From Chara braunii (Eukaryota > Plantae > Charophyceae), in assembly GCA_003427395.1 (NCBI GenBank), contig BFEA01000025.1:4638265-4701674 (forward strand): a DNA stretch of 63,410 bases, read 5' to 3'. Below the pieces are notes generated by a model. The model saw nothing but the letters and a program-made list of their open reading frames with translations, was not told the DNA's origin and did not search any database. A program made the translations under genes and the position numbers. Within the stretch, counting starts at the first letter, position 1. Each line of letters starts with the position of its first letter. Of the stretch, positions 61,501 to 63,410 are shown piece by piece.

Positions 61501-62920
61501 GATGAACGAACGACATATATGATACGAGACGGTTGCAAGCGAACAAGTTCATTATTCTACGTGTTGAGCTATTCTCTGAGTATGCGTGGCAAGACGAGGA
61601 GGATGAACTTGTGGAACGGTTACATGACTAATAGGGTTTTATTCTTACTCGCAGATGCCTGGAGTTCGAAGAAATTTGACGATCCCGAGGTACCTGCTGG
61701 TTCGTGATACATCTGAGGACGACCTCATCAGAGGAACGGAGCAGTTTTTATGGGTTCGAGATGGTTCTTCTATTGAGTGGACCGGCTTTATCGGCTTACT
61801 CCGAAATGGCGAGGCATTCTTCCCTAATACTCGCGCAGATTTCCGACCAAAAACTGCTCGGACTTCGGATAAATTTATTGGATATACTTTGTATTTTCAC
61901 CGAGCGAGCAACCTCCAATGTTTCTCTAGAGTCATTGTGAGCATTAAGATTACCTCGTCTGGCAGACGTTTCTGCGTCGTTCGAATCCGGGATACAGAGA
62001 CTAAACACTTGTTTGGACTAAGTCGGTCTCTTCGAGTCATGGTATGGAGACTAGCCTTGCGGGTGACCTCCTTCTATGGTACTTGAATCATTAGAGTTAT
62101 GGGAGGTGGGCGAGCGACGACCCTGGTTTTCGACATTGATGAGTTTGCCCGATTGGACGTATTGGAGACCCAAGTGCATAGTGGACGACAAATTTACCAG
62201 GGTTAGACGCAATTTTTTGGAAATCTTACTCGGATTCCAGAAAACGCCTCGCATAGACTAATCCCGTCGAGGGAGCCATATGACTATGGCTTCACGAGGT
62301 AATCTCAAAATAAAAACAAAAATATTTTATTTAGATAGGGTCGCCGGATGGATAGTATTCGGACTACCCCAATGATTTCACTATCATACTTTGGCATTGA
62401 GGGGTAAATATACAGGAAAGAAAAAGTAAATAAATACTCCATCATTAGAAAGGAGTCAACATAGAAAACTAGTATGAACAGTTTTCAAGTTGCACTTTAC
62501 AAGGTAACCTTAGCCACAGAATTCATAAGGATCCGACTTTGGGCTTTGGCTTAAAGGATTGAAAAAACTTTTCTCCGATAAAATAACTCTATATCAACAA
62601 CGAGGAGGAAAGCACAGTGGCATGATCTTTCCATCAGACCAAACCAGTTATATTTGTGGTTATGATTGCTGAGGTTATTGATTGAAAGGATGACTTTGTT
62701 TATATATATTGCTTTAAGCATGATCGATTTTGCCTGGATAAGTTTTATATATATACATGTATATATATATACTTATATATATATTTGTTGTTTCATGGAT
62801 GTTTTGCTGGCTTGTGATGGGGTGTGAACCGACAGTCTGTAGAGTTTTTCATCTGGTGTGAGGGGTGATAGTCTACTTTGATTTTGGTTAAGGTAGATAA
62901 TCATTTACAGTGTAATCAGT

Positions 62921-63002
62921 GAGGGGATTTTGCAGACTGTTGAGGGTTCAACCTCCTGATGAGTCGGTGAAACTCCGACGAAACAGTTTGTCACAGCCCC
63001 TC
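62921..63002 (+). ncRNA. Type I hammerhead ribozyme with an extra hairpin
   Basis: CTGATGA at 62956-62962; stem II GTCGG/CCGAC; GAAA; stem III ACA/TGT; GTC cleavage site after 62992; stem I CTGT/ACAG plus GAGGGG/CCCCTC. Confidence 0.88.
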
Positions 63003-63329
63003 GTTTGTTGTCCTCTTCTCTCTTTCTGCCTACGGTTTACCGGACAGTTCTGCTTGTGACGATATACGCTACGACTTCGCTAGCTTTCTGCTACGGTTTT
63101 TTTCGGTCAGGTCGAGCTGCAGTAGTCGGGGCCGTTACTAGGCGGCCATGCTGTGCCTCTAGTGCCAGCGGCATGTCTGGAGTGTATTTTTTGGCTATGA
63201 CAAACCTGTCTTGTTTCGTGGATGTTTTGTTGGCTTGTGACAGTCTGTAGATTTTTCCATCTGGTGAGGGTGAGTGATAGTCTACTTTGATTTTGGTTAA
63301 GATAGATTATCATTTACAGTGTAATCAGT

Positions 63330-63410
63330 GAGGGGATTCTGCAGACTGTTGAGGGTTCAGCCTCCTGATGAGTCGGTGAAACTCCGACGAAACAGTTTGT
63401 CACAGCCCCT
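63330..63410 (+). ncRNA. Second hammerhead ribozyme copy
   Basis: CTGATGA at 63365-63371 with identical core and stems; predicted cleavage after 63401. Confidence 0.88.

Follow-up and report, generated by a model that had tools for sequence, protein, structure and literature searches.

A dispersed, non-coding hammerhead retroelement family in Chara braunii with an insertion pattern like that of Penelope-like elements

A 63,410-nucleotide (nt) stretch of the genome of the charophyte alga Chara braunii (assembly GCA_003427395.1, contig BFEA01000025.1, positions 4,638,265 to 4,701,674 of the forward strand), referred to here in its full length as the window, carries near its 3' end a direct repeat that contains two hammerhead ribozyme motifs on the same strand, spaced exactly 409 nt apart. 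The locus is probably a head-to-tail pair, in the manner of a pseudo-long terminal repeat (pseudo-LTR), of a non-autonomous, non-coding retroelement of the Penelope-like element (PLE) type, and it belongs to a very abundant family of non-coding sequences of ~400-420 nt. The PLE-type reading is favored because the fixed 3' end of the family, its 5' truncation, its microsatellite target, the placing of a truncated copy before a longer one and a head-to-head pair of copies match the insertion signature published for PLEs (PMC8557442). Newly established are the type and the predicted cut sites of the ribozymes at this locus, the ends of the family as defined by reads, an inverted pair of truncated copies on an unrelated public contig (BFBZ01009962.1, designated L001), and a strand-specific, rod-like RNA fold that masks the ribozyme.

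Anatomy of the locus and its hammerhead ribozymes

The order of parts at the locus is a (TA)n microsatellite, a truncated copy 1, the remnant TATACG and a copy 2 that runs off the end of the window. The microsatellite (62746-62784, unstranded, identified by Tandem Repeats Finder and from the sequence) is the presumed insertion target and adjoins the 5' end of copy 1, which according to its alignment with copy 2 is 5'-truncated, comprises 277 nt (62786-63062, + strand) and ends with ...GTGACGA at the fixed 3' end of the family. TATACG (63063-63068, unstranded) separates the two copies as a remnant of (TA)3, and in the family DNA depth position 63067 is T in ~100% and position 63068 is A in 80%. 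Copy 2 (63069-63410, + strand) begins at or near the family 5' end, as judged from alignment and from its co-linearity with family reads, and 342 nt of it lie within the window, its 3' end being predicted near 63471. The first 141 nt of copy 2 (63069-63209, + strand), recognized from read depth and fold and termed here the 5' domain, form three small hairpins, have no Rfam match and are missing from copy 1. Family reads that extend upstream of 62788 carry the sequence of 63180-63207, and copy 1 is taken to be 5'-truncated because the family sequence ahead of 62788 is thus the end of this 141-nt segment.

The direct repeat extends over 62788-63001 and 63211-63410 with 87% identity, which includes a 15-nt indel and rises to ~96% from 62850 on. 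The unit measures ~403 nt in the version of copy 2 and ~418 nt with the 15 nt that are kept by copy 1 and many family members, the 409-nt period is the sum of unit length and remnant, and in each copy the hammerhead is placed 121 nt ahead of the 3' end. A first-pass annotation of the window, made from the letters alone, had reported two units here. The direct repeat is confirmed but two full units are not: copy 1 lacks its 5' part and copy 2 is cut off by the window, so that ~1.5 units are visible.

Both hammerhead motifs are genuine and lie far beyond chance. The 29-nt pattern of core plus helix II is present at 62956 and at 63365, with no chance match in 100 shuffles, and in E-value mode Hammerhead_3 (RF00008) is the best Rfam model for both motifs, with the full model covered. 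The scores are 45.2 bits (E 1.5e-8) for ribozyme 1 (62932-62991, + strand) and 45.8 bits (E 9.8e-9) for ribozyme 2 (63341-63400, + strand), the E-values being ~1e-8 on the region and ~1e-6 window-wide. The earlier report of two head-to-tail hammerhead cores exactly 409 nt apart is hence confirmed by repeat alignment, pattern search and Rfam. The two ribozymes differ solely in loop 1 (A to G), where the G of ribozyme 2 is the family-majority letter.

The topology of both motifs is type III, with helices I and II closed by loops and helix III open. An unconstrained free-energy fold of 62928-62996, and likewise of the second copy, gives the type III three-way junction, which for ribozyme 1 is the minimum free energy (MFE) fold at -23 kcal/mol (z -2.5). 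In this fold helix III (62932-62940 with 62983-62991) consists of 9 bp, including two G:U pairs, helix I (62942-62945 with 62952-62955) consists of 4 bp closed by a 6-nt loop, and helix II (62963-62967 with 62975-62979) consists of 5 bp with a 7-nt loop. The core CUGAUGA of ribozyme 1 occupies 62956-62962 and its GAA 62980-62982, the A15.1-U16.1 pair is present as A62983 with U62940, and the residue H17 is U62941 within a GUU triplet; the same arrangement is found at +409, where U17 of ribozyme 2 is 63350. The predicted cuts accordingly fall between 62941 and 62942 and between 63350 and 63351, which are still 409 nt apart. A GUU site is permitted by the NUH rule and is rarer than GUC.

The motifs had initially been taken as type I hammerheads with GUC cuts at 62992 and 63401. 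This reading is rejected because helix I cannot form, as A62993, C62994 and A62995 stand opposite C62955, U62954 and C62953, and because Rfam and the MFE fold both give type III. With it falls the contrast that had been drawn between a type I, non-LTR element in Chara and the type III, LTR elements of land plants. A reading as a four-way junction with an "extra hairpin" was also discarded, the extra hairpin being helix I of the type III motif.

In the context of the whole copy the ribozyme is predicted to be hidden. The (+) RNA of copy 1 folds into one long rod (MFE -103.4 kcal/mol, z -5.57 versus dinucleotide shuffles), while its (-) strand reaches only -58.8 kcal/mol (z -1.17), and the strands differ in stability because of G:U pairs, of which there are 27 on (+) and 2 on (-). 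The corresponding values for copy 2 are -139.8 (+) versus -89.9 (-), and the 409-nt RNA predicted between the two cuts (62942-63350, + strand, GC 47%) has an MFE of -153.2 kcal/mol (z -5.4 versus dinucleotide shuffles). The asymmetry between the strands in these models is a sign of selection on the (+) RNA, as is expected for an element with an RNA stage. When copy 1 is given the family-majority letters, G:C and A:U pairs are restored and the rod improves from -103.4 to -119.4 kcal/mol, and the founder RNA would therefore have been an even better rod. The masking strand is the G/U-rich arm at the upstream end of copy 1 (62788-62840, + strand), which makes 48 pairs (11 of them G:U) with the hammerhead domain at 62932-62991 in the free-energy fold, and not one of the 18 hammerhead pairs is present in the rod. 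Since the ribozyme fold is far less stable than the rod, the ribozyme should be masked at equilibrium, as in viroids and retrozymes, and is probably active only transiently or once the rod has been opened.

A dispersed, abundant and transcribed family

The tail of the element is common to two other copies in the window and to two copies on contig L001. Within the window, a 5'-truncated copy at 42204-42303 (+ strand, 91% by BLASTN) lies inside (TA)n and starts within the ribozyme core, for which reason its ribozyme is dead, and a second 5'-truncated copy at 53819-53921 (+ strand, 91% by BLASTN) has an assembly gap upstream and (TA)n downstream, both being supported by sequence and alignment. 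The two copies on L001 (265-414) are 5'-truncated tails arranged head to head, each of which runs outward into (TA)n, the left one with a rearranged 3' end. Three of these four copies stop at ...GTGACGA followed by (TA)n, and their 5' ends differ, some of them lying inside the ribozyme. Because the copies stop at the same point into (TA)n, the 3' end of the family is fixed, and it corresponds to 63062 in copy 1. L001 was the one contig found with a 24-nt tail pattern in a scan of metagenome contigs, and the exact 35-nt ribozyme pattern was absent from the metagenome contigs scanned. Elsewhere, L001 abounds in (GA)n, (GAT)n and a proline-rich repeat resembling coding sequence.

The extent and abundance of the family were assessed by mapping public reads and Logan contigs onto 62786-63209 (424 letters). 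The public runs stem from a single organism and from soil and rice-paddy samples. This entire stretch of 424 nt is highly repeated, with matches at 90% or more in 15,086 Logan contigs from a single DNA run. The summed DNA word depth, which is not a copy number, is 0.3-1.9 million over the 424-nt stretch, with 0.4-0.9 million over 63071-63205 and 1.3-1.9 million over ribozyme and tail. The joint that leads from 63207 to 62788 is the ordinary co-linear sequence of the family and is present in 82 + 420 RNA reads of run X22 and in 4 DNA contigs. At the 3' side, reads have loose ends with a (TA)n consensus behind 63051 (825 reads in X22), 63056 (350) and 63066 (879), and most family 3' ends in reads continue into long (TA)n. 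At the 5' side, TA stands ahead of 63069 in 80-100% of the family depth, and since 63067-68 reads TA in 100% and 80% of the depth, (TA)n also precedes the family start at ~63069. The ribozyme core is without any variant at or above 10% of the family depth.

The unit has no recognizable coding capacity and no LTR features. Neither its sole open reading frame (ORF), of 81 aa, nor the flanking ORFs contain a Pfam domain. Among the 26 window ORFs scanned in Pfam, nothing was found in or beside the unit, including the reverse transcriptase (RT) or GIY-YIG ORF of an autonomous PLE, and the only matches, an EGF-like ORF and a degenerate chromovirus, are both far off. A primer-binding site (PBS) for tRNA-Met has no match with up to 2 mismatches in 62786-63410, and no purine tract of the polypurine tract (PPT) type lies ahead of 63210, where the sequence is pyrimidine- and T-rich. 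The 5' domain contains runs of T7 and T6, and such T runs would stop RNA polymerase III (Pol III). The layout is thus that of a non-LTR retrozyme, namely short, non-coding, head-to-tail units with a hammerhead each and without LTR, PBS or PPT. The dispersal is not that of an LTR retrozyme, as the dispersed copies are anchored at the 3' end and 5'-truncated in (TA)n rather than present as LTRs of 300-400 bp with 4-bp duplications and as solo LTRs; at the locus itself the right end of the element, where a 4-bp target duplication would show, is beyond the window. The characterization of the element by the first-pass annotation as non-coding and non-LTR in style therefore stands, both for lack of a Pfam domain, PBS and PPT and in view of the 3'-anchored, truncated copies in (TA)n.

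The family is transcribed. Two stranded oligo-dT RNA-seq runs contain thousands of family reads, mostly in sense orientation if the usual first-mate-antisense chemistry is assumed (6162 sense versus 1196 antisense reads at 62996-63010 in X22). Many of these reads come from copies embedded in other transcripts, because 61-67% of them continue into unlike sequence. Over 62786-63209 no position is marked by an accumulation of molecule starts or stops. A 6-10-fold RNA excess over 62951-63055 was considered as a possible 3' cleavage product, but truncated copies in expressed transcripts fit it better; loose ends ahead of 62952 and 62970 carry (TA)n and locus-like flanks. Two side observations concern the RNA of the family. 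A C at 62941, which gives GUC for GUU, makes up 1.6% of the family DNA depth, 36% and 17% of the first-mate-on-+ reads (antisense RNA if the chemistry is as usual) and only 1-2% of reads in sense orientation; antisense transcription of a few GUC copies seems to be indicated. In the small runs X5-X15 (60-200 million letters, guessed to be RNA), the 3' half of the ribozyme and the tail (62966-63040) are enriched, in X5 to a depth ~30-100 times that of the remaining unit, which could reflect small RNAs or one highly expressed truncated copy.

Mode of spread and rival explanations

The pattern of the copies suggests that the element was copied into (TA)n by target-primed reverse transcription (TPRT) from its fixed 3' end, which would explain why 5' truncation varies and why stacks and partial tandems occur. 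The enzyme would most likely have been supplied by a hammerhead-bearing PLE of the Chlamys type in the same genome, as the C. braunii PLEs Chlamys-2_cBra and those of the PLE-X type carry canonical hammerheads (PMC8557442). A partial tandem and an adjacent inverted truncated copy are hallmarks of PLEs (Craig et al. 2021, PMC8557442), and the Chara family displays a partial tandem, an inverted truncated pair (on L001), 5' truncation and a microsatellite target. A truncated copy with a full-length one after it would form the pseudo-LTR layout typical of PLE insertions. The (+) RNA is envisaged as a long, G:U-rich rod with its upstream arm masking the type III ribozyme, and in transcripts of tandem copies the two predicted cuts would free a 409-nt, highly self-paired RNA, which an enzyme of the tRNA-ligase type could circularize. 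TPRT, the PLE partner, cleavage and the circle are all steps that we infer. The dependence on PLEs proposed in the first-pass annotation is in keeping with the insertion pattern, which is PLE-like in its microsatellite target, fixed 3' end, 5' truncation, tandem and head-to-head pair.

Several observations weigh against a PLE-type origin or against an active ribozyme in it. No RT-encoding partner was seen in the window, and the preference for (TA)n departs from what is published for Chlamys elements, which target (CA)n and (C)n, (TA)n being the target of the animal Naiads (PMC8557442). In addition, the PLE hammerheads described so far are of type I (PMC4209133). Both RF00008 scores are slightly below the gathering score of 48.5 bits, such that a gathering-mode scan returns neither motif, the cleavage triplet is GUU instead of the commoner GUC, and forcing the hammerhead to form costs 23.6 kcal/mol in copy 1 (-79.8 versus -103.4) and 22.5 kcal/mol in copy 2 (-117.3 versus -139.8). 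The window stops before copy 2 ends, leaving its 3' end and any further units outside. The pair could represent two separate insertions into one (TA)n tract and not one event, and elsewhere the same junction is touched by only two short Logan contigs, neither of which has 31 nt on both sides. In the oligo-dT RNA-seq, RNA ends do not pile up at the predicted cut between 62941 and 62942, although libraries selected for poly(A) reveal cut or circular RNA poorly and the missing pile is not a valid negative. Lastly, most DNA copies span the cut site. The DNA depth across the ribozyme rises only ~1.3-fold, and the RNA from which most copies were reverse-transcribed would therefore have been uncut at this site, which agrees with the finding that the PLE hammerhead is dispensable for insertion in vitro (PMC11167929).

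The same features can be read in a way that gives the ribozyme a central role. In a true non-LTR retrozyme, the 409-nt monomers cut by the hammerheads would be ligated to circles and the circle would be the obligate template, with reverse transcription starting and ending at the internal (UA)3 by microhomology with (TA)n targets. This would yield unit-length copies bounded by (TA)n, together with partial or multiple tandems generated by running round the circle. Such a cycle is possible but doubtful. It would account for two intact, co-oriented ribozymes one unit apart, for the (TA)3 remnant at the unit junction and the (TA)n that adjoins both family ends, and for a highly self-paired monomer (z -5.4) with a strand-specific rod, as in retrozymes and viroid-like RNAs (PMC4918200, PMC7229834). 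However, long (TA)n, and not another unit, follows most 3' ends in reads, and the rod disfavors the ribozyme fold by ~23 kcal/mol. The oligo-dT libraries, poor test as they are, show neither an RNA-end pile at the cut nor an RNA-specific back-joint, as the joint that goes back 420 also stands in DNA; it is no evidence of a circle because it is the normal co-linear sequence of the family. If instead the hammerhead is a passenger, or a decayed relic without a role, the element could be of the short interspersed element (SINE) kind and be moved by a long interspersed element (LINE). LINE dependence would also be compatible with the fixed 3' end, the 5' truncation and the simple-repeat tail, no PLE is found in the window, and the in-vitro dispensability of the PLE hammerhead (PMC11167929) is compatible with a ribozyme that has no function. 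This origin is nevertheless improbable, given that PLEs are marked by partial tandems in head-to-tail order and by truncated pairs in head-to-head order, that the ribozyme core has no variant reaching 10% of the family depth, that hammerhead-bearing PLEs are published for C. braunii, and that the T7 and T6 runs in the 5' domain speak against a Pol III SINE head.

Two further origins would involve neither a PLE nor a LINE. The presence of type III hammerheads in direct repeats recalls the LTR retrozymes of plants, in which the repeats would be LTRs and mobility would depend on Ty3/gypsy machinery, and a degenerate Ty3/gypsy chromovirus is in fact present in the window at 47.2-49.4 kb (47246-49402, - strand; ORF fragments with Chromo, Integrase_H2C2 and RT_RNaseH). 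It lies 13 kb from the unit and shares no sequence with it. A plant-type LTR retrozyme is very improbable here, as a tRNA-Met PBS is found nowhere in the unit and no purine tract precedes the second repeat, the unit is 409 nt long versus 600-1000 nt described, and what the family shows is a fixed 3' end with 5' truncation in (TA)n, not solo LTRs that have 4-bp duplications. Moreover, the 141 nt that would have to be "internal" are as repeated as the supposed LTR and are joined co-linearly to the repeat start in reads. An integrated viroid-like RNA replicon ("retroviroid"), or a satellite DNA without RNA-mediated spread, is scarcely credible. The viroid-sized unit, the strand-specific rod-like fold and the type III hammerhead would suit the former, but the ribozyme is present on one polarity only, there are thousands of dispersed, truncated genomic copies in (TA)n, most copies are without a following unit, and the metagenome contigs scanned lack the exact 35-nt ribozyme pattern. 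A non-autonomous PLE-type element thus remains the probable explanation of the locus.

Neighboring features, related systems and significance

The window contains a third type III hammerhead (58154-58208, - strand; Rfam 39.1 bits, E 6e-5), which belongs to a different family. It has a GUC site, a GGGG/CCCC helix I with one pair covarying with the copy at 62942, and a helix II whose stem is the same but whose loop differs. It ends ~20 nt before a (CT)n microsatellite (58066-58136), has its upstream part cut by an assembly gap (58376-58469) and shows no rod-like fold. Type III hammerheads also occur in intergenic positions on three phage-like IMG/VR contigs, L002 (3338-3366, - strand), L003 (5000-5028, + strand) and L004 (3908-3936, + strand). 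Helix II and loop 2 in L002 and L004 are identical to those of the Chara element and loop 2 in L003 is one base off, while helices I and III are different; this likeness reflects either a widely shared near-consensus module or convergence.

Other features of the window are unrelated to the element. Rfam identifies six U6 snRNA-like copies on the + strand (29758-29867, 30021-30092, 30567-30673, 33561-33664, 40489-40596 and 57649-57710), three of them above the gathering score, and a U2 fragment on the - strand (36390-36447). Several of the U6-like copies are truncated or chimeric, and together they look like a dispersed U6-derived repeat rather than a functional gene set. Also present are a weak fragment resembling large-subunit (LSU) rRNA (3433-3902, + strand, 30.7 bits), a sub-threshold MIR4239-like hairpin (25554-25671, + strand, 40 bits), a tRNA-like sequence slightly above threshold (40993-41065, - strand, 34.1 bits) and a 52-nt tandem repeat of 1.9 copies detected by Tandem Repeats Finder (59665-59765). 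In its length range, the RNase H fragment of the chromovirus has two database relatives only, both of them distant.

The Chara element shares features with several known systems and differs from each of them. Like the non-LTR retrozymes of metazoans (PMC7229834; preprint 10.64898/2026.07.22.740005), it consists of short non-coding head-to-tail units (150-450 bp in metazoans) with one hammerhead each, lacks LTR, PBS and PPT, has a GC content below 50% (47% here) and a highly self-paired monomer RNA, and resides in a genome that also contains PLEs, which have been proposed as the mobilizing partner. The metazoan hammerheads are, however, of type I, and their helix III is often weak and dependent on a dimer, whereas those of Chara are of type III with a stable 9-bp helix III. 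Long arrays are found in metazoans, whereas the Chara copies mostly seem to be dispersed in (TA)n and 5'-truncated, and for the Chara element circular RNA is only predicted. The LTR retrozymes of plants (Cervera et al. 2016, PMC4918200) have in common with it the type III hammerhead, two co-oriented ribozymes that bracket a non-coding RNA, and a host of the green lineage. They differ in that the Chara element is without LTR structure, tRNA-Met PBS, PPT or a visible 4-bp duplication, is smaller (a unit of 409 versus 600-1000 nt) and lower in GC (47% versus >55%), and has a non-LTR insertion pattern. The pseudo-LTRs of hammerhead PLEs, including Chlamys-2_cBra and PLE-X (PMC8557442, PMC4209133), likewise place a truncated copy before a longer one, form inverted truncated pairs, insert into microsatellites, are frequently 5'-truncated and carry a hammerhead near the 3' end. 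The Chara unit, in contrast, is only ~400-420 nt long, is non-coding and has no RT or GIY-YIG ORF, and it combines type III with (TA)n where the published elements have type I and, in Chlamys, (CA)n or (C)n targets. With viroids of the Avsunviroidae type and viroid-like satellite RNAs it shares the size class (~250-400 nt), the type III hammerhead and a stable, rod-like or branched fold in which the monomer's ribozyme is concealed, but it exists in thousands of genomic DNA copies and has the ribozyme in one polarity only.

The literature searched mentions hammerheads in C. braunii PLEs and as "isolated examples in algae," and contains no description of a non-autonomous charophyte element with a type III hammerhead and (TA)n targets. 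Such an element bears on the proposal of de la Pena and colleagues (PMC5680766) that plant retrozymes, and via them hammerhead viroids, descend from PLEs. This proposal leaves a gap, in that PLEs and animal retrozymes are type I and non-LTR while plant retrozymes are type III and use LTR machinery. Because it joins PLE-like, non-LTR insertion to a type III hammerhead and to a strand-specific rod of the viroid kind, the Chara element has the look expected of an intermediate. The masking of the ribozyme by a G:U-rich upstream arm is also a natural on/off design for a self-cleaving RNA, and since the family is abundant and transcribed and the host alga can be cultured, the question is directly testable. 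It may tentatively be suggested, as an unlikely but consequential possibility, that the family represents a third kind of retrozyme, mobilized by PLEs, targeted to (TA)n, non-LTR and equipped with a viroid-style type III ribozyme, whose (+) RNA would be under selection as a G:U-rich rod that turns the ribozyme off, with a cycle through a circular RNA of ~400-420 nt. If this is true, it would be a living intermediate between the hammerheads of PLEs, the LTR retrozymes of plants and the hammerhead viroids, standing at the base of the land-plant lineage.

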